Below are positions 22,476 through 48,804 of a stretch of DNA of 64,000 nucleotides, one piece after another. The first letter of the stretch is position 1. Each line of letters starts with the position of its first letter. The notes under the pieces were generated by a model, which searched no databases, had not been told where the DNA came from, and worked only from the letters and a program-made list of their open reading frames with translations. A program made the position numbers and the translations under genes. Source of the stretch: Dendrobates tinctorius (Eukaryota); contig NW_027361917.1 of NCBI RefSeq assembly GCF_039654945.1, positions 58,652,001 to 58,716,000 of the forward strand. Reading direction: 5' to 3'.

Positions 22476-22826
22476 AATAAATCACAGAGAAAAACAAGCG
22501 ATCAAAGAAATCCGACCAACAAAAGATGTATAAGAAACATATAAAAATTTATTCAAGGAAACACAGAAAAACAGGACAGGAATTAGAATCATGAGTTGAC
22601 CATGGTAGCGTGCAAGCGACCAATGGGGTACACATGGAGTAAAAGGACCTATTCGGAACATCAATAGAAGGCATATAGCTAGATGTATAATTGAAGAAAT
22701 AAATGCCAGTTCCTAACAAGGTATAATAATACGATCAAACAGGACAAGTACATAAATAAGTATTATAAGCAAATAAACAATAGCAGACTTAATACCTGTT
22801 ATGGTTGTATGTAACGGTCCACTCCA

Positions 22827-22877
22827 GTATACCCCCCCCAACGCACGTTTCGGCAGATGGCCTTTCTCAAGGGGTAC
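22827..22877 (-). ncRNA. Variant minimal type I hammerhead ribozyme (U3-A8 core), spacer 1
   Basis: GTACCCC-TTGAGAA-A-GGC-catct-GCC-GAAA-CGTGCG-TT^GGGG. Predicted cut between 22840 and 22839. Confidence 0.8.
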
Positions 22878-22879
22878 AG

Positions 22880-23780
22880 GGAAAAGAGGAAGTAAGGGGT
22901 ATTTAAGACAGAATCAACCAATCAATCCAAGGATCATACCCATGTGATCAATCACCAATGGTGCACGTGTGTCAAGGTTCCACCCAACCATAGCATCCGT
23001 TGTCATGGCTACATCCCATAGAACAAATTTATTCATATGGGTAATAGTAGACAGACTATCTGAAATAGAGAGCTAACACATAAATAAACACCTCCAAGAT
23101 GGATCTCTTTATTAGGAATCACTGCTAGCATAAGTAGTAGCCACCATTATTATATTGATCAGCGCATTAAAACCTGTGTATCGTCCAACAAAGATGACAT
23201 CATCGTTGGTGGAATCACATGAGTCGTCTTCACTTACTAACAACACCCAATATGGTACAAGTATTGGTGACCGCAGCACTAATCATGTGACTATCGTCAC
23301 GCTGCCGGGGCTCCTCCCCTATTGACGTCACCGCGCCGACGCGTCCACCTTTCATGACGCAAGTTGCCCCGACAACCAGTGCAATACAAGTATTGGTGAC
23401 CGCAGCGCTAGTTAAGTAACCATCATCACGCTGCCGGGGCTCCTCCCCCATTGACGTCACCACGCCGACGCGTCCACCAATCATGACGCAAGTTGCCCCG
23501 ACAACCAAAACAATGGGCGGCGGCGGCAACTCCAGCGTCATAGTTGTAACCACCCACAATAGGGAGGAATCAAAGAAATCAATGACTCCTCCCTAGCTGT
23601 ATCAGCCATGGCAACGCGTCCACTCATAATGACGCAGGCGTCACCCCGGCAACCAAAACAGCGGGCGGCAACGGCATCAATGTGACGTCAACTAAGTGAC
23701 TGGCCACAATGGAGATGCCGAGAGGCGTCCGATGTGAAGGAGACAGCAGTGCGCATGCGTACAGAGCGAACGTCATCCAA
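22880..23780 (-). promoter_or_regulatory. Putative PLE internal promoter upstream of the hammerhead (repeated in every spacer)
   Basis: TATA-like CTTAAATA (22900-22907), CCAAT boxes, E-box CACGTG, three full CRE TGACGTCA (23323, 23452, 23683), RFX-like GTTGCCCCGACAAC twice and GCCATGGCAAC, NRF1-like TGCGCATGCG (23750). Includes a 129-bp-period duplication at 23256-23507. Confidence 0.55.
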
Positions 23781-24295
23781 TGGCATAGGGTATAACAGCC
23801 ATAAACCTAAACAGAAACAATATAGGAGACACGCAGATTAATAGCCCGGCGCCGCCAGACAATAGTCCTAAAAATAGCGACAATAGCGATGGACAGCACA
23901 TGGTAACAAAATAAACTAGCAAAGGCGGTAATAAAGCATAGACCCAAGGCATAAAAGATATATATATGTATACAATGAAGATAACTCCTCAAAACAAACA
24001 AAAACACATAAAGAAGCAGAACATATATATATAGATTTCATAACAAAAATAGTCCTGCTATCGTTATCTTCATATGATAATATGCCGACAGGGAGATCCA
24101 GACACCCAGAGGGATAAAACAGTGGAGATGTTCAGCCGAGGGAACACAGATACACGAATATGGCAAAGGAAGACTCTGAAAAATAAAACCAAAATTAGAA
24201 CAAAAACAATAAAAACAATAAGATACGCAGCAAACAACCCATGATCAAAAAATGTAAATATAGCCAAACCATCATATATTCAAAAATAGAAACAC

Positions 24296-27200
24296 TTAAA
24301 TGAAGGGAGCAAAGCTAATAGCCTCGTTCAATCCCTTCGGATGTACTGTATCCAACAGCCATATCCATCTTGTTTCACGTTGCAACAGTCTCTGAGTTAG
24401 ATTGCCACCACGAACCCCCGGATTGATAATATCAATCCCGCGAATCCGTAGTAGAGACCCATCGCAACCATGTTTGAGTTTAAAATGTCGAGGTATTGTC
24501 CTGAGTGTGGAGGGATCCTCCTGGCCGGCTGCCGCCTGTATGCCCAACACGTGCTCACGAACACGTGTCTTCAATTGCCGCGTAGTCATACCAATATAGA
24601 TCAGGTTACATGGACATAGCGCAAAATAGATAACGTAACGTGAGGTACATAGAATACGGTTGCGAATATTAAATGTCCGAGTCCCTGAGGAATTGAAGAA
24701 CGTGTCCGTTCGCTCAATGTTGGAACAGGCGACACAGCGGCCACAAGGAGCACACCCACACACAGGACGAACCGAACTGAGAAAATTCTGTTTAGGTTCA
24801 GGTTGATAATGACTATGGACGAGATAATCCTTGAGATTCCTTGATCGACGGATAGTGACACTTGGTTTAGATGGAATAAATTTGTTAAGAATAGGGTCCG
24901 TCTGCAGAATGGGCCAAGCCTTTTGAAGACAGCCTCTCATTCTAGCAAATTGCGCATGGTAATTTGTAATAAATCTGATCTTATTATCAGTTTTAGTTTC
25001 CCTCTTCTTATATAGCAATGACTGACGTGTAGACCATCTTGCACGGTTAAAGGCTTTCTTAACAGATCTCCTACTATAGCCTCTCTCAAAGAACCTTTCC
25101 GAAAGGTCCTGGGCTTGGACTAAAAAATCCTGATCATTAGAGCAGATCCTGCGTAACCGCAGAAACTGCCCTATAGGAATAGAGTTGATCAGAGGTTTAG
25201 GGTGAGCAGAGGAGGCATGAAGTAACACATTGGAGGAAGTTTCCTTCCTAAATATTCCTGTCTGCAATGTATTATCAAAGTCTCTCCAAACATTGACATC
25301 TAAAAAACTAACCCTGGTCAAATCATAATGATATGTTATATGAATATTCATATTGTTCGAGTTAATTCCTTCCATAAAGGTTGATAACTGAAGCTCATTC
25401 CCCTGCCAGACCAGAAAAATGTCGTCGATGTACCGCACCCAAAAAGGGATGCGGTCCATCGACTGACACTGGTCAGACAGGGGGAGGTCCCTCTCCCACA
25501 GCCCCAGGAACAGGTTGGCATACGATGGGGCAAAGGAGGCCCCCATAGCTGTCCCCTGGAGCTGTAGGTAGAAGGACCCCATGAACGTAAAAAAATTATG
25601 GGTCAGGGAAAACTCGAGCAATTCAATGACCAGGGAGATGATTTCCGTAGGTAAGTTTGACATGTTTAAAAAATAACGAGTAGCAGCCAACCCATCGGCA
25701 TGTCTTATGCTGGTGTAAAGGGACTCAATGTCACCTGTCACCAGCATATTACCACTCCCGATATGAAGGCCATCAACTCTCCTAAGGAATTCACCGGTAT
25801 CGAGTAAAAAGGAGGGCAGACTTTCAACGAGGGGCTGTAATTTGGAGTCAATCCAACGATTGACTTTTTCCAAATAATTCCCAGAGCCAGAAATAATAGG
25901 ACGACCGGGGGGGGCCTCGAGACACTTGTGTATTTTAGGTAATAAATAAAATGTTGCAATGGTAGGTTCCTGTACCTGCATCGTAAGAGCCAATTCCTTG
26001 GTGATAACACCATTTTGAACGGCTGTATTAATGATTTTATTCAGCTGTAACACAAATGAGGCAAGGGGGTTAAACGTCAAACGCTTGTAGCATACCTTGT
26101 TAGTTAATTGTCTGAATGCCTCCTTCTCATAGAGGAACTTAGGCCATATTACCACATTGCCCCCTTTATCAGCTGGCTTTAACACAATGTCAGGAAGCCC
26201 CCTCAGGACGTCCAATCTCATGCGTTCCTCACGACTAAGATTGTCCCTGCCCACACCCCCAGGGATTTTCATAAAGTCCTTAGTAACGACCTGAACAAAA
26301 AGATCAATAGCTGCACATGTCGCCAGTGGAGGAAATTTTTTAGATTTCATTCTGATGGATTGAGGAATCTTACCTCCCTCTCCAGTTGTATGTTCAATGG
26401 AAAGATCCTCAAGATCCTGCAGGGCTACTTGCTCCTCTTCTGTGGGAAAAAGATTTTGCAAATCTGAGTTGAAAAAATGTCTCTTGAAAATCAGAGATCT
26501 AGCAAAAAGATGTAGATCTTTGATGGCCATAAAAGCATTGAAATGAGACTTTGGAGAAAACGTGAGTCCCCTACTCAACAGTGAAAGATCAGAATCAGTT
26601 AAAATATGAGAGCTCAGGTTAATTACCTTATTGTTATTATTAGTACGTTCAGGTGATCTGAACTTCATCCGCTTGTAGGGGTGGAAATTCACGTCTCTTA
26701 CTCTCTTAGATCTTGCTCCAGATCGTGTAGTTATCGATGAAGTAGACCATTCTGAAGAATCACTCATGGAGGAAAGGGAACTCACTGAAAATACTCCATG
26801 CATTTTAGGGGCTTTGATATTAAATTTTCTCCAAGCATAGACACTCTTATTTGCAAAATCTTTAGTATCACGATGCAATTTAGAGGTCTGCATTTCATTT
26901 ATTTTTTTGACACAAATGTCCAGATTCTTTTCAATACGAGATTCATATTCGACAACCTTCTCAGATGGACACAATGCTTTAAAATTACGTTCAGCCTCAT
27001 CAATCGATTTATCCAAGTCTACAATAAGCTTAGAATTCCGTTCAATCAATAGCTTCAAGAAAACATTAGAACAAACACCACATGCTTCCTCCCATCGACT
27101 GATAAAATCATCATCGTCGATAGGGAATGAGGGAATAACCCTTATTCTCAGACCTCTGGGAATAATGTTAAAAGAGACATATTTCTCCAGGAAGGCCCTA

Positions 27201-27433
27201 TTCCACCATATCCTCGTCCGTTTTAGTAACAGTTTCTCAATTTCAAGAACTTGGCTATCAAGTGTTTGATCCATATGTGGCTGTAACTCGACTCCACCTG
27301 TCCCGAATACCTGGTCTATTTGTCCGAGCCAGGCCTTCTCTTTAGCTCGAAAATCCATATCCAAAACACCAAAAGAACCTGTGCATAACACAGTAAAATT
27401 AATACATAACCATATTAAGGATACTAATCCCAT
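24296..27433 (-). CDS. PLE reverse transcriptase + GIY-YIG endonuclease, copy 1 (1045 aa; probable true start MDFRAK at 27358, 1020 aa)
   Basis: KVINLS, KPADKGG, LPKIHK..PGRPIIS, GDIESLYTSI, GTAMGASFAPSYANLF, RYIDD, FLDV. Cys-rich linker CAPCGRCVAC. VIY..CPC..YIGMTTRQLKTRVREH..RE..WI..L.T..P.GLN. Confidence 0.97.
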   Translation of the reverse strand: MGLVSLIWLCINFTVLCTGSFGVLDMDFRAKEKAWLGQIDQVFGTGGVELQPHMDQTLDSQVLEIEKLLLKRTRIWWNRAFLEKYVSFNIIPRGLRIRVIPSFPIDDDDFISRWEEACGVCSNVFLKLLIERNSKLIVDLDKSIDEAERNFKALCPSEKVVEYESRIEKNLDICVKKINEMQTSKLHRDTKDFANKSVYAWRKFNIKAPKMHGVFSVSSLSSMSDSSEWSTSSITTRSGARSKRVRDVNFHPYKRMKFRSPERTNNNNKVINLSSHILTDSDLSLLSRGLTFSPKSHFNAFMAIKDLHLFARSLIFKRHFFNSDLQNLFPTEEEQVALQDLEDLSIEHTTGEGGKIPQSIRMKSKKFPPLATCAAIDLFVQVVTKDFMKIPGGVGRDNLSREERMRLDVLRGLPDIVLKPADKGGNVVIWPKFLYEKEAFRQLTNKVCYKRLTFNPLASFVLQLNKIINTAVQNGVITKELALTMQVQEPTIATFYLLPKIHKCLEAPPGRPIISGSGNYLEKVNRWIDSKLQPLVESLPSFLLDTGEFLRRVDGLHIGSGNMLVTGDIESLYTSIRHADGLAATRYFLNMSNLPTEIISLVIELLEFSLTHNFFTFMGSFYLQLQGTAMGASFAPSYANLFLGLWERDLPLSDQCQSMDRIPFWVRYIDDIFLVWQGNELQLSTFMEGINSNNMNIHITYHYDLTRVSFLDVNVWRDFDNTLQTGIFRKETSSNVLLHASSAHPKPLINSIPIGQFLRLRRICSNDQDFLVQAQDLSERFFERGYSRRSVKKAFNRARWSTRQSLLYKKRETKTDNKIRFITNYHAQFARMRGCLQKAWPILQTDPILNKFIPSKPSVTIRRSRNLKDYLVHSHYQPEPKQNFLSSVRPVCGCAPCGRCVACSNIERTDTFFNSSGTRTFNIRNRILCTSRYVIYFALCPCNLIYIGMTTRQLKTRVREHVLGIQAAAGQEDPSTLRTIPRHFKLKHGCDGSLLRIRGIDIINPGVRGGNLTQRLLQRETRWIWLLDTVHPKGLNEAISFAPFI

Positions 27434-27846
27434 TCAATCAGATATAAATATACCAATCCTAGACTAAAAGTATGAAAAATTGGGATTATAATGAGGGATA
27501 TCTATAACAGGATAATCGCAAAATATAATAAATCACAGAGAAAAACAAGCGATCAAAGAAATCCGACCAACAAAAGATGTATAAGAAACATATAAAAATT
27601 TATTCAAGGAAACACAGAAAAACAGGACAGGAATTAGAATCATGAGTTGACCATGGTAGCGTGCAAGCGACCAATGGGGTACACATGGAGTAAAAGGACC
27701 TATTCGGAACATCAATAGAAGGCATATAGCTAGATGTATAATTGAAGAAATAAATGCCAGTTCCTAACAAGGTATAATAATACGATCAAACAGGACAAGT
27801 ACATAAATAAGTATTATAAGCAAATAAACAATAGCAGACTTAATAC
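27379..27846 (-). other. Putative 468-nt leader intron of the PLE
   Basis: Donor CAG|GTATTA ~45 nt after the hammerhead cut. Acceptor ttttactgtgttatgcacAG|G lies 20 nt before the MDFRAK ATG. U-rich interior. PLEs are known to retain leader introns. Confidence 0.55.
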
Positions 27847-27877
27847 CTGTTATGGTTGTATGTAACGGTCCACTCCA

Positions 27878-27928
27878 GTATACCCCCCCCAACGCACGTT
27901 TCGGCAGATGGCCTTTCTCAAGGGGTAC
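27878..27928 (-). ncRNA. Variant hammerhead ribozyme, spacer 2
   Basis: Identical to spacer 1. Predicted cut 27891/27890. Confidence 0.8.
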
Positions 27929-29346
27929 AGGGAAAAGAGGAAGTAAGGGGTATTTAAGACAGAATCAACCAATCAATCCAAGGATCATACCCATGTGATC
28001 AATCACCAATGGTGCACGTGTGTCAAGGTTCCACCCAACCATAGCATCCGTTGTCATGGCTACATCCCATAGAACAAATTTATTCATATGGGTAATAGTA
28101 GACAGACTATCTGAAATAGAGAGCTAACACATAAATAAACACCTCCAAGATGGATCTCTTTATTAGGAATCACTGCTAGCATAAGTAGTAGCCACCATTA
28201 TTATATTGATCAGCGCATTAAAACCTGTGTATCGTCCAACAAAGATGACATCATCGTTGGTGGAATCACATGAGTCGTCTTCACTTACTAACAACACCCA
28301 ATACGGTACAAGTATTGGTGACCGCAGCACTAATCATGTGACTATCGTCACGCTGCCGGGGCTCCTCCCCTATTGACGTCACCGCGCCGACGCGTCCACC
28401 TTTCATGACGCAAGTTGCCCCGACAACCAGTGCAATACAAGTATTGGTGACCGCAGCGCTAGTTAAGTAACCATCATCACGCTGCCGGGGCTCCTCCCCC
28501 ATTGACGTCACCACGCCGACGCGTCCACCAATCATGACGCAAGTTGCCCCGACAACCAAAACAATGGGCGGCGGCGGCAACTCCAGCGTCATAGTTGTAA
28601 CCACCCACAATAGGGAGGAATCAAAGAAATCAATGACTCCTCCCTAGCTGTATCAGCCATGGCAACGCGTCCACTCATAATGACGCAGGCGTCACCCCGG
28701 CAACCAAAACAGCGGGCGGCAACGGCATCAATGTGACGTCAACTAAGTGACTGGCCACAATGGAGATGCCGAGAGGCGTCCGATGTGAAGGAGACAGCAG
28801 TGCGCATGCGTACAGAGCGAACGTCATCCAATGGCATAGGGTATAACAGCCATAAACCTAAACAGAAACAATATAGGAGACACGCAGATTAATAGCCCGG
28901 CGCCGCCAGACAATAGTCCTAAAAATAGCGACAATAGCGATGGACAGCACATGGTAACAAAATAAACTAGCAAAGGCGGTAATAAAGCATAGACCCAAGG
29001 CATAAAAGATATATATATGTATACAATGAAGATAACTCCTCAAAACAAACAAAAACACATAAAGAAGCAGAACATATATATATAGATTTCATAACAAAAA
29101 TAGTCCTGCTATCGTTATCTTCATATGATAATATGCCGACAGGGAGATCCAGACACCCAGAGGGATAAAACAGTGGAGATGTTCAGCCGAGGGAACACAG
29201 ATACACGAATATGGCAAAGGAAGACTCTGAAAAATAAAACCAAAATTAGAACAAAAACAATAAAAACAATAAGATACGCAGCAAACAACCCATGATCAAA
29301 AAATGTAAATATAGCCAAACCATCATATATTCAAAAATAGAAACAC

Positions 29347-32300
29347 TTAAATGAAGGGAGCAAAGCTAATAGCCTCGTTCAATCCCTTCGGATGTACTGT
29401 ATCCAACAGCCATATCCATCTTGTTTCACGTTGCAACAGTCTCTGAGTTAGATTGCCACCACGAACCCCCGGATTGATAATATCAATCCCGCGAATCCGT
29501 AGTAGAGACCCATCGCAACCATGTTTGAGTTTAAAATGTCGAGGTATTGTCCTGAGTGTGGAGGGATCCTCCTGGCCGGCTGCCGCCTGTATGCCCAACA
29601 CGTGCTCACGAACACGTGTCTTCAATTGCCGCGTAGTCATACCAATATAGATCAGGTTACATGGACATAGCGCAAAATAGATAACGTAACGTGAGGTACA
29701 TAGAATACGGTTGCGAATATTAAATGTCCGAGTCCCTGAGGAATTGAAGAACGTGTCCGTTCGCTCAATGTTGGAACAGGCGACACAGCGGCCACAAGGA
29801 GCACACCCACACACAGGACGAACCGAACTGAGAAAATTCTGTTTAGGTTCAGGTTGATAATGACTATGGACGAGATAATCCTTGAGATTCCTTGATCGAC
29901 GGATAGTGACACTTGGTTTAGATGGAATAAATTTGTTAAGAATAGGGTCCGTCTGCAGAATGGGCCAAGCCTTTTGAAGACAGCCTCTCATTCTAGCAAA
30001 TTGCGCATGGTAATTTGTAATAAATCTGATCTTATTATCAGTTTTAGTTTCCCTCTTCTTATATAGCAATGACTGACGTGTAGACCATCTTGCACGGTTA
30101 AAGGCTTTCTTAACAGATCTCCTACTATAGCCTCTCTCAAAGAACCTTTCCGAAAGGTCCTGGGCTTGGACTAAAAAATCCTGATCATTAGAGCAGATCC
30201 TGCGTAACCGCAGAAACTGCCCTATAGGAATAGAGTTGATCAGAGGTTTAGGGTGAGCAGAGGAGGCATGAAGTAACACATTGGAGGAAGTTTCCTTCCT
30301 AAATATTCCTGTCTGCAATGTATTATCAAAGTCTCTCCAAACATTGACATCTAAAAAACTAACCCTGGTCAAATCATAATGATATGTTATATGAATATTC
30401 ATATTGTTCGAGTTAATTCCTTCCATAAAGGTTGATAACTGAAGCTCATTCCCCTGCCAGACCAGAAAAATGTCGTCGATGTACCGCACCCAAAAAGGGA
30501 TGCGGTCCATCGACTGACACTGGTCAGACAGGGGGAGGTCCCTCTCCCACAGCCCCAGGAACAGGTTGGCATACGATGGGGCAAAGGAGGCCCCCATAGC
30601 TGTCCCCTGGAGCTGTAGGTAGAAGGACCCCATGAACGTAAAAAAATTATGGGTCAGGGAAAACTCGAGCAATTCAATGACCAGGGAGATGATTTCCGTA
30701 GGTAAGTTTGACATGTTTAAAAAATAACGAGTAGCAGCCAACCCATCGGCATGTCTTATGCTGGTGTAAAGGGACTCAATGTCACCTGTCACCAGCATAT
30801 TACCACTCCCGATATGAAGGCCATCAACTCTCCTAAGGAATTCACCGGTATCGAGTAAAAAGGAGGGCAGACTTTCAACGAGGGGCTGTAATTTGGAGTC
30901 AATCCAACGATTGACTTTTTCCAAATAATTCCCAGAGCCAGAAATAATAGGACGACCAGGGGGGGCCTCGAGACACTTGTGTATTTTAGGTAATAAATAA
31001 AATGTTGCAATGGTAGGTTCCTGTACCTGCATCGTAAGAGCCAATTCCTTGGTGATAACACCATTTTGAACGGCTGTATTAATGATTTTATTCAGCTGTA
31101 ACACAAATGAGGCAAGGGGGTTAAACGTCAAACGCTTGTAGCATACCTTGTTAGTTAATTGTCTGAATGCCTCCTTCTCATAGAGGAACTTAGGCCATAT
31201 TACCACATCGCCCCCTTTATCAGCTGGCTTTAACACAATGTCAGGAAGCCCCCTCAGGACGTCCAATCTCATGCGTTCCTCACGACTAAGATTGTCCCTG
31301 CCCACACCCCCAGGGATTTTCATAAAGTCCTTAGTAACGACCTGAACAAAAAGATCAATAGCTGCACATGTCGCCAGTGGAGGAAATTTTTTAGATTTCA
31401 TTCTGATGGATTGAGGAATCTTACCTCCCTCTCCAGTTGTATGTTCAATGGAAAGATCCTCAAGATCCTGCAGGGCTACTTGCTCCTCTTCTGTGGGAAA
31501 AAGATTTTGCAAATCTGAGTTGAAAAAATGTCTCTTGAAAATCAGAGATCTAGCAAAAAGATGTAGATCTTTGATGGCCATAAAAGCATTGAAATGAGAC
31601 TTTGGAGAAAACGTGAGTCCCCTACTCAACAGTGAAAGATCAGAATCAGTTAAAATATGAGAGCTCAGGTTAATTACCTTATTGTTATTATTAGTACGTT
31701 CAGGTGATCTGAACTTCATCCGCTTGTAGGGGTGGAAATTCACGTCTCTTACTCTCTTAGATCTTGCTCCAGATCGTGTAGTTATCGATGAAGTAGACCA
31801 TTCTGAAGAATCACTCATGGAGGAAAGGGAACTCACTGAAAATACTCCATGCATTTTAGGGGCTTTGATATTAAATTTTCTCCAAGCATAGACACTCTTA
31901 TTTGCAAAATCTTTAGTATCACGATGCAATTTAGAGGTCTGCATTTCATTTATTTTTTTGACACAAATGTCCAGATTCTTTTCAATACGAGATTCATATT
32001 CGACAACCTTCTCAGATGGACACAATGCTTTAAAATTACGTTCAGCCTCATCAATCGATTTATCCAAGTCTACAATAAGCTTAGAATTCCGTTCAATCAA
32101 TAGCTTCAAGAAAACATTAGAACAAACACCACATGCTTCCTCCCATCGACTGATAAAATCATCATCGTCGATAGGGAATGAGGGAATAACCCTTATTCTC
32201 AGACCTCTGGGAATAATGTTAAAAGAGACATATTTCTCCAGGAAGGCCCTATTCCACCATATCCTCGTCCGTTTTAGTAACAGTTTCTCAATTTCAAGAA

Positions 32301-32484: not shown

Positions 32485-32678
32485 TCAATCAGATATAAAT
32501 ATACCAATCCTAGACTAAAAGTATGAAAAATTGGGATTATAATGAGGGATATCTATAACAGGATAATCGCAAAATATAATAAATCACAGAGAAAAACAAG
32601 CGATCAAAGAAATCCGACCAACAAAAGATGTATAAGAAACATATAAAAATGTATTCAAGGAAACACAGAAAAAAAACA

Positions 32679-32940
32679 CAGGGCTACTTGCTCCTCTTCT
32701 GTGGGAAAAAGATTTTGCAAATCTGAGTTGAAAAAATGTCTCTTGAAAATCAGAGATCTAGCAAAAAGATGTAGATCTTTGATGGCCATAAAAGCATTGA
32801 AATGAGACTTTGGAGAAAACGTGAGTCCCCTACTCAACAGTGAAAGATCAGAATCAGTTAAAATATGAGAGCTCAGGTTAATTACCTTATTGTTATTATT
32901 AGTACGCACGTTTCGGCAGATGGCCTTTCTCAAGGGGTAC
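32679..32940 (-). other. Type-B spacer: hammerhead truncated at its cleavage site and fused to a 228-bp copy of ORF sequence
   Basis: 32679-32906 matches 26420-26647. Sense junction GAAACGTGCGT|ACTAAT with 3-nt CGT microhomology. Confidence 0.92.
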
Positions 32941-37496: not shown

Positions 37497-37690
37497 TCAA
37501 TCAGATATAAATATACCAATCCTAGACTAAAAGTATGAAAAATTGGGATTATAATGAGGGATATCTATAACAGGATAATCGCAAAATATAATAAATCACA
37601 GAGAAAAACAAGCGATCAAAGAAATCCGACCAACAAAAGATGTATAAGAAACATATAAAAATGTATTCAAGGAAACACAGAAAAAAAACA

Positions 37691-37952
37691 CAGGGCTACT
37701 TGCTCCTCTTCTGTGGGAAAAAGATTTTGCAAATCTGAGTTGAAAAAATGTCTCTTGAAAATCAGAGATCTAGCAAAAAGATGTAGATCTTTGATGGCCA
37801 TAAAAGCATTGAAATGAGACTTTGGAGAAAACGTGAGTCCCCTACTCAACAGTGAAAGATCAGAATCAGTTAAAATATGAGAGCTCAGGTTAATTACCTT
37901 ATTGTTATTATTAGTACGCACGTTTCGGCAGATGGCCTTTCTCAAGGGGTAC
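37691..37952 (-). other. Type-B spacer, second copy
   Basis: Identical junctions to 32679-32940. Confidence 0.92.
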
Positions 37953-39370: not shown

Positions 39371-42300
39371 TTAAATGAAGGGAGCAAAGCTAATAGCCTC
39401 GTTCAATCCCTTCGGATGTACTGTATCCAACAGCCATATCCATCTTGTTTCACGTTGCAACAGTCTCTGAGTTAGATTGCCACCACGAACCCCCGGATTG
39501 ATAATATCAATCCCGCGAATCCGTAGTAGAGACCCATCGCAACCATGTTTGAGTTTAAAATGTCGAGGTATTGTCCTGAGTGTGGAGGGATCCTCCTGGC
39601 CGGCTGCCGCCTGTATGCCCAACACGTGCTCACGAACACGTGTCTTCAATTGCCGCGTAGTCATACCAATATAGATCAGGTTACATGGACATAGCGCAAA
39701 ATAGATAACGTAACGTGAGGTACATAGAATACGGTTGCGAATATTAAATGTCCGAGTCCCTGAGGAATTGAAGAACGTGTCCGTTCGCTCAATGTTGGAA
39801 CAGGCGACACAGCGGCCACAAGGAGCACACCCACACACAGGACGAACCGAACTGAGAAAATTCTGTTTAGGTTCAGGTTGATAATGACTATGGACGAGAT
39901 AATCCTTGAGATTCCTTGATCGACGGATAGTGACACTTGGTTTAGATGGAATAAATTTGTTAAGAATAGGGTCCGTCTGCAGAATGGGCCAAGCCTTTTG
40001 AAGACAGCCTCTCATTCTAGCAAATTGCGCATGGTAATTTGTAATAAATCTGATCTTATTATCAGTTTTAGTTTCCCTCTTCTTATATAGCAATGACTGA
40101 CGTGTAGACCATCTTGCACGGTTAAAGGCTTTCTTAACAGATCTCCTACTATAGCCTCTCTCAAAGAACCTTTCCGAAAGGTCCTGGGCTTGGACTAAAA
40201 AATCCTGATCATTAGAGCAGATCCTGCGTAACCGCAGAAACTGCCCTATAGGAATAGAGTTGATCAGAGGTTTAGGGTGAGCAGAGGAGGCATGAAGTAA
40301 CACATTGGAGGAAGTTTCCTTCCTAAATATTCCTGTCTGCAATGTATTATCAAAGTCTCTCCAAACATTGACATCTAAAAAACTAACCCTGGTCAAATCA
40401 TAATGATATGTTATATGAATATTCATATTGTTCGAGTTAATTCCTTCCATAAAGGTTGATAACTGAAGCTCATTCCCCTGCCAGACCAGAAAAATGTCGT
40501 CGATGTACCGCACCCAAAAAGGGATGCGGTCCATCGACTGACACTGGTCAGACAGGGGGAGGTCCCTCTCCCACAGCCCCAGGAACAGGTTGGCATACGA
40601 TGGGGCAAAGGAGGCCCCCATAGCTGTCCCCTGGAGCTGTAGGTAGAAGGACCCCATGAACGTAAAAAAATTATGGGTCAGGGAAAACTCGAGCAATTCA
40701 ATGACCAGGGAGATGATTTCCGTAGGTAAGTTTGACATGTTTAAAAAATAACGAGTAGCAGCCAACCCATCGGCATGTCTTATGCTGGTGTAAAGGGACT
40801 CAATGTCACCTGTCACCAGCATATTACCACTCCCGATATGAAGGCCATCAACTCTCCTAAGGAATTCACCGGTATCGAGTAAAAAGGAGGGCAGACTTTC
40901 AACGAGGGGCTGTAATTTGGAGTCAATCCAACGATTGACTTTTTCCAAATAATTCCCAGAGCCAGAAATAATAGGACGACCGGGGGGGGCCTCGAGACAC
41001 TTGTGTATTTTAGGTAATAAATAAAATGTTGCAATGGTAGGTTCCTGTACCTGCATCGTAAGAGCCAATTCCTTGGTGATAACACCATTTTGAACGGCTG
41101 TATTAATGATTTTATTCAGCTGTAACACAAATGAGGCAAGGGGGTTAAACGTCAAACGCTTGTAGCATACCTTGTTAGTTAATTGTCTGAATGCCTCCTT
41201 CTCATAGAGGAACTTAGGCCATATTACCACATTGCCCCCTTTATCAGCTGGCTTTAACACAATGTCAGGAAGCCCCCTCAGGACGTCCAATCTCATGCGT
41301 TCCTCACGACTAAGATTGTCCCTGCCCACACCCCCAGGGATTTTCATAAAGTCCTTAGTAACGACCTGAACAAAAAGATCAATAGCTGCACATGTCGCCA
41401 GTGGAGGAAATTTTTTAGATTTCATTCTGATGGATTGAGGAATCTTACCTCCCTCTCCAGTTGTATGTTCAATGGAAAGATCCTCAAGATCCTGCAGGGC
41501 TACTTGCTCCTCTTCTGTGGGAAAAAGATTTTGCAAATCTGAGTTGAAAAAATGTCTCTTGAAAATCAGAGATCTAGCAAAAAGATGTAGATCTTTGATG
41601 GCCATAAAAGCATTGAAATGAGACTTTGGAGAAAACGTGAGTCCCCTACTCAACAGTGAAAGATCAGAATCAGTTAAAATATGAGAGCTCAGGTTAATTA
41701 CCTTATTGTTATTATTAGTACGTTCAGGTGATCTGAACTTCATCCGCTTGTAGGGGTGGAAATTCACGTCTCTTACTCTCTTAGATCTTGCTCCAGATCG
41801 TGTAGTTATCGATGAAGTAGACCATTCTGAAGAATCACTCATGGAGGAAAGGGAACTCACTGAAAATACTCCATGCATTTTAGGGGCTTTGATATTAAAT
41901 TTTCTCCAAGCATAGACACTCTTATTTGCAAAATCTTTAGTATCACGATGCAATTTAGAGGTCTGCATTTCATTTATTTTTTTGACACAAATGTCCAGAT
42001 TCTTTTCAATACGAGATTCATATTCGACAACCTTCTCAGATGGACACAATGCTTTAAAATTACGTTCAGCCTCATCAATCGATTTATCCAAGTCTACAAT
42101 AAGCTTAGAATTCCGTTCAATCAATAGCTTCAAGAAAACATTAGAACAAACACCACATGCTTCCTCCCATCGACTGATAAAATCATCATCGTCGATAGGG
42201 AATGAGGGAATAACCCTTATTCTCAGACCTCTGGGAATAATGTTAAAAGAGACATATTTCTCCAGGAAGGCCCTATTCCACCATATCCTCGTCCGTTTTA

Positions 42301-42508
42301 GTAACAGTTTCTCAATTTCAAGAACTTGGCTATCAAGTGTTTGATCCATATGTGGCTGTAACTCGACTCCACCTGTCCCGAATACCTGGTCTATTTGTCC
42401 GAGCCAGGCCTTCTCTTTAGCTCGAAAATCCATATCCAAAACACCAAAAGAACCTGTGCATAACACAGTAAAATTAATACATAACCATATTAAGGATACT
42501 AATCCCAT
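39371..42508 (-). CDS. PLE RT + GIY-YIG, copy 4
   Basis: Intact ORF with the same motifs. Confidence 0.97.
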   Translation of the reverse strand: MGLVSLIWLCINFTVLCTGSFGVLDMDFRAKEKAWLGQIDQVFGTGGVELQPHMDQTLDSQVLEIEKLLLKRTRIWWNRAFLEKYVSFNIIPRGLRIRVIPSFPIDDDDFISRWEEACGVCSNVFLKLLIERNSKLIVDLDKSIDEAERNFKALCPSEKVVEYESRIEKNLDICVKKINEMQTSKLHRDTKDFANKSVYAWRKFNIKAPKMHGVFSVSSLSSMSDSSEWSTSSITTRSGARSKRVRDVNFHPYKRMKFRSPERTNNNNKVINLSSHILTDSDLSLLSRGLTFSPKSHFNAFMAIKDLHLFARSLIFKRHFFNSDLQNLFPTEEEQVALQDLEDLSIEHTTGEGGKIPQSIRMKSKKFPPLATCAAIDLFVQVVTKDFMKIPGGVGRDNLSREERMRLDVLRGLPDIVLKPADKGGNVVIWPKFLYEKEAFRQLTNKVCYKRLTFNPLASFVLQLNKIINTAVQNGVITKELALTMQVQEPTIATFYLLPKIHKCLEAPPGRPIISGSGNYLEKVNRWIDSKLQPLVESLPSFLLDTGEFLRRVDGLHIGSGNMLVTGDIESLYTSIRHADGLAATRYFLNMSNLPTEIISLVIELLEFSLTHNFFTFMGSFYLQLQGTAMGASFAPSYANLFLGLWERDLPLSDQCQSMDRIPFWVRYIDDIFLVWQGNELQLSTFMEGINSNNMNIHITYHYDLTRVSFLDVNVWRDFDNTLQTGIFRKETSSNVLLHASSAHPKPLINSIPIGQFLRLRRICSNDQDFLVQAQDLSERFFERGYSRRSVKKAFNRARWSTRQSLLYKKRETKTDNKIRFITNYHAQFARMRGCLQKAWPILQTDPILNKFIPSKPSVTIRRSRNLKDYLVHSHYQPEPKQNFLSSVRPVCGCAPCGRCVACSNIERTDTFFNSSGTRTFNIRNRILCTSRYVIYFALCPCNLIYIGMTTRQLKTRVREHVLGIQAAAGQEDPSTLRTIPRHFKLKHGCDGSLLRIRGIDIINPGVRGGNLTQRLLQRETRWIWLLDTVHPKGLNEAISFAPFI

Positions 42509-42952
42509 TCAATCAGATATAAATATACCAATCCTAGACTAAAAGTATGAAAAATTGGGATTATAATGAGGGATATCTATAACAGGATAATCGCAAAATA
42601 TAATAAATCACAGAGAAAAACAAGCGATCAAAGAAATCCGACCAACAAAAGATGTATAAGAAACATATAAAAATGTATTCAAGGAAACACAGAAAAACAG
42701 GACAGGAATTAGAATCATGAGTTGACCATGGTAGCGTGCAAGCGACCAATGGGGTACACATGGAGTAAAAGGACCTATTCGGAACATCAATAGAAGGCAT
42801 ATAGCTAGATGTATAATTGAAGAAATAAATGCCAGTTCCTAACAAGGTATAATAATACGATCAAACAGGACAAGTACATAAATAAGTATTATAAGCAAAT
42901 AAACAATAGCAGACTTAATACCTGTTATGGTTGTATGTAACGGTCCACTCCA

Positions 42953-43003
42953 GTATACCCCCCCCAACGCACGTTTCGGCAGATGGCCTTTCTCAAGGGG
43001 TAC
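42953..43003 (-). ncRNA. Variant hammerhead ribozyme, spacer 5
   Basis: Identical to spacer 1. Predicted cut 42966/42965. Confidence 0.8.
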
Positions 43004-44421
43004 AGGGAAAAGAGGAAGTAAGGGGTATTTAAGACAGAATCAACCAATCAATCCAAGGATCATACCCATGTGATCAATCACCAATGGTGCACGTGTGTCA
43101 AGGTTCCACCCAACCATAGCATCCGTTGTCATGGCTACATCCCATAGAACAAATTTATTCATATGGGTAATAGTAGACAGACTATCTGAAATAGAGAGCT
43201 AACACATAAATAAACACCTCCAAGATGGATCTCTTTATTAGGAATCACTGCTAGCATAAGTAGTAGCCACCATTATTATATTGATCAGCGCATTAAAACC
43301 TGTGTATCGTCCAACAAAGATGACATCATCGTTGGTGGAATCACATGAGTCGTCTTCACTTACTAACAACACCCAATACGGTACAAGTATTGGTGACCGC
43401 AGCACTAATCATGTGACTATCGTCACGCTGCCGGGGCTCCTCCCCTATTGACGTCACCGCGCCGACGCGTCCACCTTTCATGACGCAAGTTGCCCCGACA
43501 ACCAGTGCAATACAAGTATTGGTGACCGCAGCGCTAGTTAAGTAACCATCATCACGCTGCCGGGGCTCCTCCCCCATTGACGTCACCACGCCGACGCGTC
43601 CACCAATCATGACGCAAGTTGCCCCGACAACCAAAACAATGGGCGGCGGCGGCAACTCCAGCGTCATAGTTGTAACCACCCACAATAGGGAGGAATCAAA
43701 GAAATCAATGACTCCTCCCTAGCTGTATCAGCCATGGCAACGCGTCCACTCATAATGACGCAGGCGTCACCCCGGCAACCAAAACAGCGGGCGGCAACGG
43801 CATCAATGTGACGTCAACTAAGTGACTGGCCACAATGGAGATGCCGAGAGGCGTCCGATGTGAAGGAGACAGCAGTGCGCATGCGTACAGAGCGAACGTC
43901 ATCCAATGGCATAGGGTATAACAGCCATAAACCTAAACAGAAACAATATAGGAGACACGCAGATTAATAGCCCGGCGCCGCCAGACAATAGTCCTAAAAA
44001 TAGCGACAATAGCGATGGACAGCACATGGTAACAAAATAAACTAGCAAAGGCGGTAATAAAGCATAGACCCAAGGCATAAAAGATATATATATGTATACA
44101 ATGAAGATAACTCCTCAAAACAAACAAAAACACATAAAGAAGCAGAACATATATATATAGATTTCATAACAAAAATAGTCCTGCTATCGTTATCTTCATA
44201 TGATAATATGCCGACAGGGAGATCCAGACACCCAGAGGGATAAAACAGTGGAGATGTTCAGCCGAGGGAACACAGATACACGAATATGGCAAAGGAAGAC
44301 TCTGAAAAATAAAACCAAAATTAGAACAAAAACAATAAAAACAATAAGATACGCAGCAAACAACCCATGATCAAAAAATGTAAATATAGCCAAACCATCA
44401 TATATTCAAAAATAGAAACAC

Positions 44422-47400
44422 TTAAATGAAGGGAGCAAAGCTAATAGCCTCGTTCAATCCCTTCGGATGTACTGTATCCAACAGCCATATCCATCTTGTT
44501 TCACGTTGCAACAGTCTCTGAGTTAGATTGCCACCACGAACCCCCGGATTGATAATATCAATCCCGCGAATCCGTAGTAGAGACCCATCGCAACCATGTT
44601 TGAGTTTAAAATGTCGAGGTATTGTCCTGAGTGTGGAGGGATCCTCCTGGCCGGCTGCCGCCTGTATGCCCAACACGTGCTCACGAACACGTGTCTTCAA
44701 TTGCCGCGTAGTCATACCAATATAGATCAGGTTACATGGACATAGCGCAAAATAGATAACGTAACGTGAGGTACATAGAATACGGTTGCGAATATTAAAT
44801 GTCCGAGTCCCTGAGGAATTGAAGAACGTGTCCGTTCGCTCAATGTTGGAACAGGCGACACAGCGGCCACAAGGAGCACACCCACACACAGGACGAACCG
44901 AACTGAGAAAATTCTGTTTAGGTTCAGGTTGATAATGACTATGGACGAGATAATCCTTGAGATTCCTTGATCGACGGATAGTGACACTTGGTTTAGATGG
45001 AATAAATTTGTTAAGAATAGGGTCCGTCTGCAGAATGGGCCAAGCCTTTTGAAGACAGCCTCTCATTCTAGCAAATTGCGCATGGTAATTTGTAATAAAT
45101 CTGATCTTATTATCAGTTTTAGTTTCCCTCTTCTTATATAGCAATGACTGACGTGTAGACCATCTTGCACGGTTAAAGGCTTTCTTAACAGATCTCCTAC
45201 TATAGCCTCTCTCAAAGAACCTTTCCGAAAGGTCCTGGGCTTGGACTAAAAAATCCTGATCATTAGAGCAGATCCTGCGTAACCGCAGAAACTGCCCTAT
45301 AGGAATAGAGTTGATCAGAGGTTTAGGGTGAGCAGAGGAGGCATGAAGTAACACATTGGAGGAAGTTTCCTTCCTAAATATTCCTGTCTGCAATGTATTA
45401 TCAAAGTCTCTCCAAACATTGACATCTAAAAAACTAACCCTGGTCAAATCATAATGATATGTTATATGAATATTCATATTGTTCGAGTTAATTCCTTCCA
45501 TAAAGGTTGATAACTGAAGCTCATTCCCCTGCCAGACCAGAAAAATGTCGTCGATGTACCGCACCCAAAAAGGGATGCGGTCCATCGACTGACACTGGTC
45601 AGACAGGGGGAGGTCCCTCTCCCACAGCCCCAGGAACAGGTTGGCATACGATGGGGCAAAGGAGGCCCCCATAGCTGTCCCCTGGAGCTGTAGGTAGAAG
45701 GACCCCATGAACGTAAAAAAATTATGGGTCAGGGAAAACTCGAGCAATTCAATGACCAGGGAGATGATTTCCGTAGGTAAGTTTGACATGTTTAAAAAAT
45801 AACGAGTAGCAGCCAACCCATCGGCATGTCTTATGCTGGTGTAAAGGGACTCAATGTCACCTGTCACCAGCATATTACCACTCCCGATATGAAGGCCATC
45901 AACTCTCCTAAGGAATTCACCGGTATCGAGTAAAAAGGAGGGCAGACTTTCAACGAGGGGCTGTAATTTGGAGTCAATCCAACGATTGACTTTTTCCAAA
46001 TAATTCCCAGAGCCAGAAATAATAGGACGACCAGGGGGGGCCTCGAGACACTTGTGTATTTTAGGTAATAAATAAAATGTTGCAATGGTAGGTTCCTGTA
46101 CCTGCATCGTAAGAGCCAATTCCTTGGTGATAACACCATTTTGAACGGCTGTATTAATGATTTTATTCAGCTGTAACACAAATGAGGCAAGGGGGTTAAA
46201 CGTCAAACGCTTGTAGCATACCTTGTTAGTTAATTGTCTGAATGCCTCCTTCTCATAGAGGAACTTAGGCCATATTACCACATTGCCCCCTTTATCAGCT
46301 GGCTTTAACACAATGTCAGGAAGCCCCCTCAGGACGTCCAATCTCATGCGTTCCTCACGACTAAGATTGTCCCTGCCCACACCCCCAGGGATTTTCATAA
46401 AGTCCTTAGTAACGACCTGAACAAAAAGATCAATAGCTGCACATGTCGCCAGTGGAGGAAATTTTTTAGATTTCATTCTGATGGATTGAGGAATCTTACC
46501 TCCCTCTCCAGTTGTATGTTCAATGGAAAGATCCTCAAGATCCTGCAGGGCTACTTGCTCCTCTTCTGTGGGAAAAAGATTTTGCAAATCTGAGTTGAAA
46601 AAATGTCTCTTGAAAATCAGAGATCTAGCAAAAAGATGTAGATCTTTGATGGCCATAAAAGCATTGAAATGAGACTTTGGAGAAAACGTGAGTCCCCTAC
46701 TCAACAGTGAAAGATCAGAATCAGTTAAAATATGAGAGCTCAGGTTAATTACCTTATTGTTATTATTAGTACGTTCAGGTGATCTGAACTTCATCCGCTT
46801 GTAGGGGTGGAAATTCACGTCTCTTACTCTCTTAGATCTTGCTCCAGATCGTGTAGTTATCGATGAAGTAGACCATTCTGAAGAATCACTCATGGAGGAA
46901 AGGGAACTCACTGAAAATACTCCATGCATTTTAGGGGCTTTGATATTAAATTTTCTCCAAGCATAGACACTCTTATTTGCAAAATCTTTAGTATCACGAT
47001 GCAATTTAGAGGTCTGCATTTCATTTATTTTTTTGACACAAATGTCCAGATTCTTTTCAATACGAGATTCATATTCGACAACCTTCTCAGATGGACACAA
47101 TGCTTTAAAATTACGTTCAGCCTCATCAATCGATTTATCCAAGTCTACAATAAGCTTAGAATTCCGTTCAATCAATAGCTTCAAGAAAACATTAGAACAA
47201 ACACCACATGCTTCCTCCCATCGACTGATAAAATCATCATCGTCGATAGGGAATGAGGGAATAACCCTTATTCTCAGACCTCTGGGAATAATGTTAAAAG
47301 AGACATATTTCTCCAGGAAGGCCCTATTCCACCATATCCTCGTCCGTTTTAGTAACAGTTTCTCAATTTCAAGAACTTGGCTATCAAGTGTTTGATCCAT

Positions 47401-47559
47401 ATGTGGCTGTAACTCGACTCCACCTGTCCCGAATACCTGGTCTATTTGTCCGAGCCAGGCCTTCTCTTTAGCTCGAAAATCCATATCCAAAACACCAAAA
47501 GAACCTGTGCATAACACAGTAAAATTAATACATAACCATATTAAGGATACTAATCCCAT
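44422..47559 (-). CDS. PLE RT + GIY-YIG, copy 5
   Basis: Intact ORF with the same motifs. Confidence 0.97.
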   Translation of the reverse strand: MGLVSLIWLCINFTVLCTGSFGVLDMDFRAKEKAWLGQIDQVFGTGGVELQPHMDQTLDSQVLEIEKLLLKRTRIWWNRAFLEKYVSFNIIPRGLRIRVIPSFPIDDDDFISRWEEACGVCSNVFLKLLIERNSKLIVDLDKSIDEAERNFKALCPSEKVVEYESRIEKNLDICVKKINEMQTSKLHRDTKDFANKSVYAWRKFNIKAPKMHGVFSVSSLSSMSDSSEWSTSSITTRSGARSKRVRDVNFHPYKRMKFRSPERTNNNNKVINLSSHILTDSDLSLLSRGLTFSPKSHFNAFMAIKDLHLFARSLIFKRHFFNSDLQNLFPTEEEQVALQDLEDLSIEHTTGEGGKIPQSIRMKSKKFPPLATCAAIDLFVQVVTKDFMKIPGGVGRDNLSREERMRLDVLRGLPDIVLKPADKGGNVVIWPKFLYEKEAFRQLTNKVCYKRLTFNPLASFVLQLNKIINTAVQNGVITKELALTMQVQEPTIATFYLLPKIHKCLEAPPGRPIISGSGNYLEKVNRWIDSKLQPLVESLPSFLLDTGEFLRRVDGLHIGSGNMLVTGDIESLYTSIRHADGLAATRYFLNMSNLPTEIISLVIELLEFSLTHNFFTFMGSFYLQLQGTAMGASFAPSYANLFLGLWERDLPLSDQCQSMDRIPFWVRYIDDIFLVWQGNELQLSTFMEGINSNNMNIHITYHYDLTRVSFLDVNVWRDFDNTLQTGIFRKETSSNVLLHASSAHPKPLINSIPIGQFLRLRRICSNDQDFLVQAQDLSERFFERGYSRRSVKKAFNRARWSTRQSLLYKKRETKTDNKIRFITNYHAQFARMRGCLQKAWPILQTDPILNKFIPSKPSVTIRRSRNLKDYLVHSHYQPEPKQNFLSSVRPVCGCAPCGRCVACSNIERTDTFFNSSGTRTFNIRNRILCTSRYVIYFALCPCNLIYIGMTTRQLKTRVREHVLGIQAAAGQEDPSTLRTIPRHFKLKHGCDGSLLRIRGIDIINPGVRGGNLTQRLLQRETRWIWLLDTVHPKGLNEAISFAPFI

Positions 47560-47753
47560 TCAATCAGATATAAATATACCAATCCTAGACTAAAAGTATG
47601 AAAAATTGGGATTATAATGAGGGATATCTATAACAGGATAATCGCAAAATATAATAAATCACAGAGAAAAACAAGCGATCAAAGAAATCCGACCAACAAA
47701 AGATGTATAAGAAACATATAAAAATGTATTCAAGGAAACACAGAAAAAAAACA

Positions 47754-48015
47754 CAGGGCTACTTGCTCCTCTTCTGTGGGAAAAAGATTTTGCAAATCTG
47801 AGTTGAAAAAATGTCTCTTGAAAATCAGAGATCTAGCAAAAAGATGTAGATCTTTGATGGCCATAAAAGCATTGAAATGAGACTTTGGAGAAAACGTGAG
47901 TCCCCTACTCAACAGTGAAAGATCAGAATCAGTTAAAATATGAGAGCTCAGGTTAATTACCTTATTGTTATTATTAGTACGCACGTTTCGGCAGATGGCC
48001 TTTCTCAAGGGGTAC
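47754..48015 (-). other. Type-B spacer, third copy
   Basis: Identical junctions to 32679-32940. Confidence 0.92.
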
Positions 48016-48296
48016 AGGGAAAAGAGGAAGTAAGGGGTATTTAAGACAGAATCAACCAATCAATCCAAGGATCATACCCATGTGATCAATCACCAATGGT
48101 GCACGTGTGTCAAGGTTCCACCCAACCATAGCATCCGTTGTCATGGCTACATCCCATAGAACAAATTTATTCATATGGGTAATAGTAGACAGACTATCTG
48201 AAATAGAGAGCTAACACATAAATAAACACCTCCAAGATGGATCTCTTTATTAGGAATCACTGCTAGCATAAGTAGTAGCCACCATTATTATATTGA

Positions 48297-48789
48297 CGTG
48301 CGTTGGGGGGGGTATACTGGAGTGGACCGTTACATACAACCATAACAGGTATTAAGTCTGCTATTGTTTATTTGCTTATAATACTTATTTATGTACTTGT
48401 CCTGTTTGATCATATTATTATACCTTGTTAGGAACTGGCATTTATTTCTTCAATTATACATCTAGCTATATGCCTTCTATTGATGTTCCGAATAGGTCCT
48501 TTTACTCCATGTGTACCCCATTGGTCGCTTGCACGCTACCATGGTCAACTCATGATTCTAATTCCTGTCCTGTTTTTCTGTGTTTCCTTGAATAAATTTT
48601 TATATGTTTCTTATACATCTTTTGTTGGTCGGATTTCTTTGATCGCTTGTTTTTCTCTGTGATTTATTATATTTTGCGATTATCCTGTTATAGATATCCC
48701 TCATTATAATCCCAATTTTTCATACTTTTAGTCTAGGATTGGTATATTTATATCTGATTGAATGGGATTAGTATCCTTAATATGGTTAT
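48297..48789 (+). repeat. Inverted type-A pLTR/leader segment at the 5' end of the array
   Basis: Reverse complement of ~27406-27898. Begins CGTGCGTTGGGGGGGG, i.e. within hammerhead stem III. Confidence 0.95.
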
Positions 48790-48804
48790 ATACCAACAAC
48801 AGTG

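Follow-up and report, generated by a model that had tools for sequence, protein, structure and literature searches.

A five-unit Penelope array at a single Tc1 integration site in a poison frog genome: possible growth by unequal exchange

Known Systems

Tandem or partial-tandem units, inverted truncated copies, target-site duplications (TSDs) of variable length, and hammerhead ribozymes within the pseudo-long terminal repeats (pLTRs) are established features of Penelope-like elements (PLEs) (PMC8557442). For the origin of the tandems, however, several mechanisms compete: templates of multi-copy RNA, circles cut by ribozymes, and recombination at a later stage all are candidates, and the only in vitro PLE system is recent. 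Here, we describe a Penelope array lodged in a Tc1 transposon of the frog Dendrobates tinctorius. The window analyzed is a gap-free stretch of 64,000 nucleotides (nt) from contig NW_027361917.1. As a natural test case, the locus has much to offer: a host gene that can still be read carries a single TSD, both canonical termini are present, five units are intact, and junction markers occur together with single-nucleotide polymorphisms (SNPs). Since there are two junction markers and a few SNPs, the history of the array can be read; it may have begun as a much smaller insertion.

The closest relatives are the canonical endonuclease-bearing (EN+) PLEs, Penelope/Poseidon and Neptune (Evgen'ev and Arkhipova 2005; Craig et al. 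2021, PMC8557442). These likewise carry a hammerhead in the repeat upstream of the open reading frame (ORF), and their insertions likewise show head-to-tail units with an inverted, truncated arm on the 5' side; the array has a TSD of 15 bp. Three features set the array apart: it has five complete intact units, whereas sampled relatives have one or two; it has two junction types, one of them a scar present three times; and its termini differ by about 121 nt, in contrast to the published "tail" of 30–40 bp.

PAc, a Poseidon element from Anolis carolinensis, cuts both strands of its target in vitro and extends each of them, with reverse transcription starting inside the RNA near the pLTR-ORF junction. 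The PAc locus is a tandem repeat transcribed as multi-copy RNA, and no need for hammerhead-cut ends was seen (PMC11167929). Both the two-strand extension and the internal start near the beginning of the ORF match the array termini. However, PAc starts 111–118 nt into the ORF without primer homology, whereas the array starts are at −94 and +28. Moreover, the array primers, that is, the target 3' ends, can both pair with the RNA just downstream of the starts if G-U pairs are allowed (by eye: left, five of 5 nt; right, eight of 8 nt with a 16-bp TSD).

Animal non-LTR retrozymes (type I hammerhead tandems with circular RNAs; PMC7229834) also consist of tandem units punctuated by a Penelope-type min-hammerhead, and probably use the same mobilizing machinery. 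Their units are noncoding and 0.3–1 kb long, whereas those of the array are coding and 5 kb long. In addition, half of the array junctions lack a complete ribozyme. Unequal crossover also has been invoked for retrozyme tandem expansion (Li, Clavereau and Pollet, preprint 2026). For Penelope tandems, routes through circles, multimers, and ribozymes were proposed in 2014 (PMC4209133).

One Insertion, Five Units

The array spans positions 22476–48790 (Table 1). It is flanked by perfect 15-bp copies of TACCAACAACAGTGT, which become 16 bp if the preceding A is included. The host is a Tc1/Sleeping-Beauty-like transposon: its transposase contains the Pfam domains HTH_SB, HTH_Tnp_Tc3_2, and DDE_3 (E-values of 2e-23, 5e-23, and 3e-15, respectively), and its 210-bp inverted repeats match each other at 99.5% in a self-comparison. 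Taking out the insert along with one TSD copy leaves an open transposase frame of 340 amino acids (aa), which resumes at 48791 and stops at 48882. In other copies of this Tc1 element, contigs in four sequencing runs cross the insertion site uninterrupted. With one TSD, and with canonical Penelope termini at both ends, the array occupies a single integration site.

These results confirm two claims of an earlier note on this DNA, namely that the insert lies under a single TSD and that its removal restores the Tc1 ORF. They also support the claim that the insert is very young: the units differ by no more than 0.08%, the TSD is perfect, and the host frame is intact. Likewise confirmed are the five open, near-identical frames of 1045 codons encoding reverse transcriptase (RT) and a GIY-YIG nuclease. 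All lie on the minus strand and differ pairwise by 0–2 nt and 0–2 aa (N426D in unit 2, S692L in unit 3), and all five units are competent for coding, as the note had it. The description of the insert as a head-to-tail block of five units holds for the direct units, which share one strand, but leaves out a 495-bp inverted arm at the right end.

Two Junction Types and a Recombinant Unit

The anatomy of the array was established by self-comparison of the window and by column-by-column comparison of the units. Along the plus strand, 96 nt at the left end are followed by five bodies, with junctions A, A, B, B, A, and B placed in front of body 1, between successive bodies, and behind body 5; the 318-bp beginning of a sixth body and the inverted arm complete the insert. 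Each body is 4782 bp. The junctions, however, are of two lengths, A (269 bp) and B (230 bp), and this difference accounts for the two unit periods (5051, 5012, 5012, and 5051 bp, from left to right). Junction A is the normal segment of the 5' untranslated region (UTR). Junction B has, in place of A, a 228-bp sense copy of an ORF piece (26420–26647). Its hammerhead-side boundary shows 3 nt of microhomology (ACG on the plus strand) with both parents; its 5'UTR-side boundary contains about five filler letters. Each junction type is present in three identical copies. Since scar B has the same breakpoints and the same filler all three times, it represents one event that was copied (identity by descent) rather than three template jumps. 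Four of the five intact copies retain the full upstream repeat.

The inverted arm copies the 5'UTR and the ORF start in reverse orientation (99.6–99.8% match), and meets the direct arm with 1 nt of shared sequence. With one base in 495, its distance from the units does not significantly exceed the distances among the units themselves, a comparison made with concerted evolution of an old array in mind. Nested self-insertion (homing) was rejected as the route to the tandem, as neither internal TSDs nor internal inverted arms are present.

The five bodies vary at six positions, four of which are singletons. At the two shared sites, units 1 and 4 carry T412/G3066 and units 2 and 5 carry C412/A3066. 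Unit 3, with T412/A3066, is a recombinant of these two types. The shared sites and the junction types form a higher-order repeat: 22841–33221 matches 37916–48296 with three mismatches in 10,381 bp, at an offset of 15,075 bp, and the recombinant unit stands between the two. Comparison with a D. tinctorius relative gave the ancestral state at offsets 2518, 3317, and 4759, but not at 254, 412, and 3066. At offset 4759, the ancestral base is found in the D. tinctorius relative, the 96-nt end, the inverted arm, and unit 1, and the derived base in unit 4.

A product of one event would have seamless or independent junctions and no nested duplication. The array instead contains an identical scar in triplicate, a repeat offset by 15,075 bp, and a recombinant unit. 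On these grounds, the central proposal of the earlier note, that the 26 kb is one retrotransposition concatemer, is not supported.

Termini and Related Frog Loci

At either border the insert finishes, facing outward, in the 3' end of a sense copy: on the left at −94 from the ATG of a unit, and on the right, where the arm is inverted, at +28 of the ORF. Related loci end similarly. The two arms of a Ranitomeya locus (L002), which has a 14-bp TSD, end at −101 and +27 (positions 5243 and 14725); a D. tinctorius locus (L001) has +27 (13773) as the terminus of the one arm whose end is included in the retrieved DNA. Termini at about −94 to −101 and at +27/+28 thus are kept across three frog Penelope families (55–100% protein identity). 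These matching termini in relatives indicate defined RT start sites, not accidents.

Six related frog loci (L001–L006) were sampled. All share the build of the array, a pLTR partial tandem, typically with one full ORF per arm and with a maximum of two, so that the earlier statement that typical copies are one unit plus a fragment is borne out. An arm longer than one unit nevertheless is the rule (1.3–2.2 units). In the D. tinctorius locus (JAYMGB010000027.1, 1–13773), two Penelope arms of 100% identity stand head to head, the plus arm with 1.29 units and the minus arm, which runs off the fetched locus, with at least 1.5. Its turning point, at 7469, lies inside the minus-arm ORF (aa 238). The longest related array in the sample, apart from that of the window, is in Anomaloglossus baeobatrachus (L003, 4131–14693): 2.2 units in 10.6 kb, with two full ORFs, a 13–16-bp TSD, and no inverted arm. 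Its units are 100% identical over 5,795 bp. Compared with these six loci, which have one or two complete intact units, the five in the window are unusual.

The Hammerhead and Nearby Breakpoints

A min-hammerhead of the U3-A8 variant lies 458–493 nt upstream of the ATG. Read on the sense strand (27926–27883), it comprises helix I (ACCCC/GGGG), the core UUGAGAA with one unpaired A, and helix II (GGC-loop-GCC), followed by GAAAC, a GUGC loop, GU, and U17. Equivalent complete motifs are at 22832–22875 and 42958–43001. The 3' strand of helix I sits in segment A, so the full motif occurs at the three A junctions only; at the three B junctions, the motif ends at the cleavage site and lacks that strand. 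The earlier claim of one hammerhead per unit therefore is right about the motif but not about its distribution, and the retrozyme arrangement, with a complete hammerhead in every unit, is not what is found: helix I is kept at three of six junctions. Predicted self-cutting of the array would release pieces of 5,051 and 15,075 nt.

Rfam reported neither a hammerhead nor any other credible family, either in the whole window at gathering thresholds or in one unit at E≤10. A search for the canonical CUGANGA...GAAA pattern found no sense-strand match in the array; its matches were two motifs outside the array and, within each ORF, one antisense occurrence by chance. Folding of the hammerhead region by minimum free energy gave no usable signal (z = −0.01). 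The comparison with relatives says more. In the D. tinctorius family, with an ORF that is 78% identical, the hammerhead block is identical except for two letters of loop II. The Ranitomeya and Anomaloglossus relatives have the same build upstream of the ORF, with the canonical cores CUGAGGA and CUGACGA. Because these C3-G8 cores stand at the same place, the array core is a compensatory U3-A8 form. The hammerhead assignment thus is supported by homology and covariation; cleavage is predicted.

The two canonical-looking cores outside the array, both on the minus strand (8772–8800 and 9688–9716), consist of CUGAUGA or CUGACGA, a 5–6-bp stem II, and GAAA; neither receives an Rfam call at gathering score. 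Presumably, they belong to other Penelope or retrozyme fragments.

The U3-A8 variant, along with an unpaired base before stem II, has been described previously for Penelope min-hammerheads (PMC4209133). In particular, the min-hammerhead of the Schistosoma PLE Cercyon shows the same change from C3-G8 to U3-A8, as well as a helix III of one to two pairs with a 4-nt loop (PMC4209133). The array variant, known from sequence, differs in coming from a vertebrate (frog) family; moreover, its helix III loop, GUGC, is palindromic only if G-U pairs are counted.

Two breakpoints fall close to the predicted cleavage site. The hammerhead-side breakpoint of scar B is 1–4 nt away (GAAACGUG-CGU, then ORF; 32901–32906, 37913–37918, and 47976–47981). 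The inverted arm stops 8–9 nt past the cleavage site; since it reads beyond that site, its template was uncut. Two independent breakpoints within about 8 nt, in a unit of 5 kb, suggest either an RNA end or a strong RT stop.

How the Array May Have Grown

The reading we favor, with a probability of about 0.5, is that the array began as a two-armed insertion of the canonical Penelope kind, with one to two units, and that at least two unequal exchanges enlarged it. An EN+ PLE would have integrated once into the Tc1 transposase gene, both nicked strands serving for target-primed reverse transcription: the 3' end of the top strand at 22475 would have primed a cDNA starting at unit position −94, and that of the bottom strand at 48790/48791 a second cDNA that started at ORF +28 and stopped after 495 nt. 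The primary product probably had the architecture usual for Penelope: one or two full units, an untidy 5' end made up of the 318-bp piece and scar B, and an inverted arm truncated on its 5' side. The scar would have been made once, when RT left the 5'UTR, copied 228 nt of the ORF, and landed within 1–4 nt of the predicted cut. Next to the outermost B are the 318-bp end piece and the inverted arm, a place in which template-switch scars arise as reverse transcription ends; this position accords with a single origin of B at the 5' end, with later copies carried inward.

Subsequent growth would have occurred at the DNA level, by unequal homologous exchange between the array's own repeats. Three steps suffice: pairing of the 96-nt terminal piece with a unit end, creating an internal A; pairing of the 318-bp piece with the first unit, for a gain of two units; and a crossover within bodies, between offsets 412 and 3066, for a gain of one unit and a hybrid unit 3. 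Indeed, the T412/A3066 combination in unit 3 is as expected for a crossover product. This path yields the observed junction series, A,A,B,B,A,B, and accounts for all but one of the six variable sites; that the duplications occurred at this locus after insertion, and in this order, is inferred. Furthermore, since related loci have one or two full ORFs per arm, five would not be the usual primary product. Of the three routes listed in the earlier note, later unequal crossover is the best fit.

Several points weigh against this scenario. Offset 4759 misfits the simplest path, requiring one extra gene conversion or recurrent change, and only two SNPs are phylogenetically informative. The same pattern is generated by RT copy-choice on a heterogeneous multi-unit RNA, or by inheritance from a source array. 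The Anomaloglossus array (2.2 units, 10.6 kb, 100% identity, one TSD) shows that either products of more than two units or very fast expansion do occur. Finally, the number of units is taken from the assembly alone, the read data being short Logan contigs.

Could the array have been written in one step? RT starting at −94 would have copied a multi-unit read-through RNA of about 25.8 kb, or switched between long RNAs, transcribed from an existing array that already had both junction types and both haplotypes. The internal history then would belong to that source, and the singletons could be RT errors. We consider this somewhat unlikely, while acknowledging its attractions: PLE loci are transcribed as RNAs with several copies (PMC11167929); the arms of relatives usually exceed one unit, the longest, at 100% identity, having 2.2 units (10.6 kb); RT error could account for as few as four singletons in 26 kb; and the AATAAA hexamer of the 5'UTR is altered in units 2–5, which could favor read-through. 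Nevertheless, both the cDNA and the RNA would have to be 2.4 times as long as the longest arm seen among relatives. The unseen source would need at least 5.1 units, and would itself call for duplication of scar B at the DNA level. The stop of the direct arm only 318 nt past a B scar would be a coincidence. A related proposal, unlikely as well, is that a single integration event produced all 25.8 kb of the direct arm, from RNAs that were long or joined in series, with scar B marking RT landing on the 3' end of a hammerhead-cut RNA. If true, in vivo cutting by Penelope hammerheads, and the use of the cut RNAs as acceptors for jumps, would for the first time have support from genomic sequence, and the RT of a TERT-related transposon would be able to make products of more than 25 kb.

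The published model for Penelope tandems (Cervera and de la Peña 2014, PMC4209133) would instead have the concatemer written by rolling-circle or serial-jump copying of a hammerhead-cut, unit-length, possibly circularized RNA. A conserved hammerhead indeed sits at the unit boundary, and the right boundary of scar B lies so close to the predicted cleavage site that the acceptor RNA might have ended there. However, a monomer circle would yield uniform A junctions and identical units, and a dimer strict alternation of A and B, rather than A,A,B,B,A,B and a recombinant unit. B junctions lack helix I and cannot be cut; the template of the inverted arm was uncut; and an RNA contig of a 97–98% relative spans the cleavage site uncut. 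We regard this origin as highly improbable. Accordingly, two other routes in the earlier note fare less well than crossover: serial template jumping on ribozyme-cut units cannot yield the same filler-bearing scar three times, and the circular or multimeric RNA route fails for a single monomeric or dimeric circle, although copying of a long array RNA is still viable.

Quite improbable, too, is an assembly artefact in the number or order of units, arising from false duplication of a two-unit block or from two haplotypes placed in series. Near-identical 5-kb repeats are difficult to assemble, the two 10.4-kb blocks differ by only three bases, and none of the short contigs spans the array. Against this, the window is free of gaps, each of the five units has its own haplotype, and every run of three junctions is unique, from which it follows that reads of about 11 kb or more would resolve the order. 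In addition, contigs of the source sample are interrupted at 46033 and 46284, both of them variable sites, which is what the presence of both alleles in the reads would produce. Growth of a small insertion by unequal exchange remains the reading we prefer.

Table 1. Coordinates of the array and of its host element in the window
Feature	Position	Strand	Remarks
Host Tc1, left inverted repeat	21161..21369		99.5% inverted match to 48892–49101
Tc1 transposase ORF, pre-insertion part	21530..22475	+	Pfam HTH_SB, HTH_Tnp_Tc3_2, DDE_3
TSD, left copy, 15 bp	22461..22475		Identical to 48791–48805
3' terminal partial unit: 96 nt (22476–22571) and junction A (22572–22840)	22476..22840	-	Identical to 27527–27891
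Unit 1 body, ORF 24296–27433	22841..27622	-	T412/G3066; ancestral T at offset 4759
Junction A, units 1/2	27623..27891	-	Identical to 22572–22840 and 42698–42966; 5'UTR segment after hammerhead cleavage site
Complete min-hammerhead, U3-A8 variant	27883..27926	-	Predicted cut between 27891 and 27890
Unit 2 body, ORF 29347–32484	27892..32673	-	C412/A3066; singleton at offset 3317 (N426D)
Junction B scar	32674..32903	-	Identical copies at 37686–37915 and 47749–47978
Unit 3 body, ORF 34359–37496	32904..37685	-	Recombinant, T412/A3066; singletons at offsets 254 and 2518 (S692L)
Unit 4 body, ORF 39371–42508	37916..42697	-	As unit 1 except offset 4759
Junction A, units 4/5	42698..42966	-	From column comparison
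Unit 5 body, ORF 44422–47559	42967..47748	-	As unit 2 except offset 3317
5' terminal 318-bp piece: 3'UTR end, truncated hammerhead core; direct arm stops	47979..48296	-	100% identical to 22841–23158
Inverted arm: sense copy of 27899 down to 27405, ending at ORF +28 beside right TSD	48296..48790	+	99.6–99.8% inverted match
TSD, right copy, 15 bp	48791..48805		Identical to 22461–22475
Host Tc1, right inverted repeat	48892..49101		Inverted match to 21161–21369

The Encoded Protein and Its Family

The 1045-aa protein falls below threshold for Pfam RVT_1 (E = 2.6e-4; 21.2 bits, with a cut-off of 29.6), and its C-terminal piece falls below the cut-off for GIY-YIG (E = 0.0019). RT motifs nevertheless can be read: DKG at aa 422 and YIDD at aa 668. 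The nuclease core, VIYFALCPCNLIYIG, is at aa 934–948 (VIY...CPC...YIG) and encloses two cysteines, in keeping with the CCHH motif; the downstream R, H, E, and N residues also are present in the translation. Homologues at E≤1e-10 number 163, all Penelope-type proteins from frogs and other animals, with the precomputed domains PF28514, PF26215, and PF00078, and in some cases PF01541. The best homologues are dendrobatid: D. tinctorius, 83% (a partial protein), and Ranitomeya imitator, 56%. Within the RT-EN linker, a Cys cluster, CGCAPCGRCVAC (aa 892–903), fits the CX2-5CxxC pattern of Neptune/Nematis-type PLEs (PMC8557442), a match of motif alone.

By these features, the element is assigned to the EN+ PLEs: RT, GIY-YIG, a pLTR tandem with inverted copy and TSD, and a hammerhead all are recognizable. 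The family is best described as a young dendrobatid Penelope with a Neptune-type linker motif. Of 1007 aligned contigs from the source-like sample, 641 are 95–99% relatives; the family thus is not restricted to the 22476–48790 locus.

Reads, RNA, and Surroundings

All sequencing runs were examined as short Logan contigs; one run (X5) is RNA. Perfectly matching unitigs have a depth of about 32–46, and rare-variant contigs of about 4–8, which hints at several copies; these values were left unused, the stretch containing no single-copy control. The RNA contigs cover only the pLTR region of a 97–98% relative, running uncut through the hammerhead site and departing from the element at the position equivalent to 27519, near the 3' end used in the array. 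They show transcription of relatives, not of the window array. Past the 27519 equivalent, one contig (aligned at 48421–48676) matches the 124-bp satellite unit of 16740–17873, so another copy of the family must be in or next to such a satellite.

Each unit contains two 129-bp tandem repeats with TGACGTCA and CCAAT-like motifs (43382–43641; e.g., 23256–23507), about 420–670 nt upstream of the hammerhead. In the RNA run, a SMART template-switch adaptor precedes plus-strand position 43641, marking an RNA 5' end antisense to the element, which suggests that the pLTR of the 97–98% relative contains a bidirectional promoter. The 5'UTR sense hexamer AATAAA is kept in the D. tinctorius relative, in unit 1 (27600), in the 96-nt end, and in the inverted arm. 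Units 2–5 have the derived AATACA (at 32651, 37663, 42675, and 47726, the equivalents of 27600), a change that could weaken a polyadenylation signal and favor read-through.

The surroundings are rich in transposons overall. A hAT-type transposase is encoded in two overlapping frames (12502–14271, zf-BED; 14237–16375, hAT dimerization domain), flanked by nine-copy tandem arrays of 133 bp (11603–12802) and 124 bp (16740–17873). Fragments of an LTR-retrotransposon pol gene (RVT_1, RT_RNaseH_2) occupy two frames at 55332–57811.

Significance

For specialists, interest lies in a scar breakpoint at the predicted hammerhead cleavage site, and in RT start sites (about −94 to −101, and +27/+28) conserved in three frog families. 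More generally, the history of this locus points to unequal exchange acting on a standard small insertion, and argues against long Penelope arrays as direct products of RT. Since all five copies are intact, and the upstream repeat is complete in four of them, the array also is plausible as an active source of new insertions.

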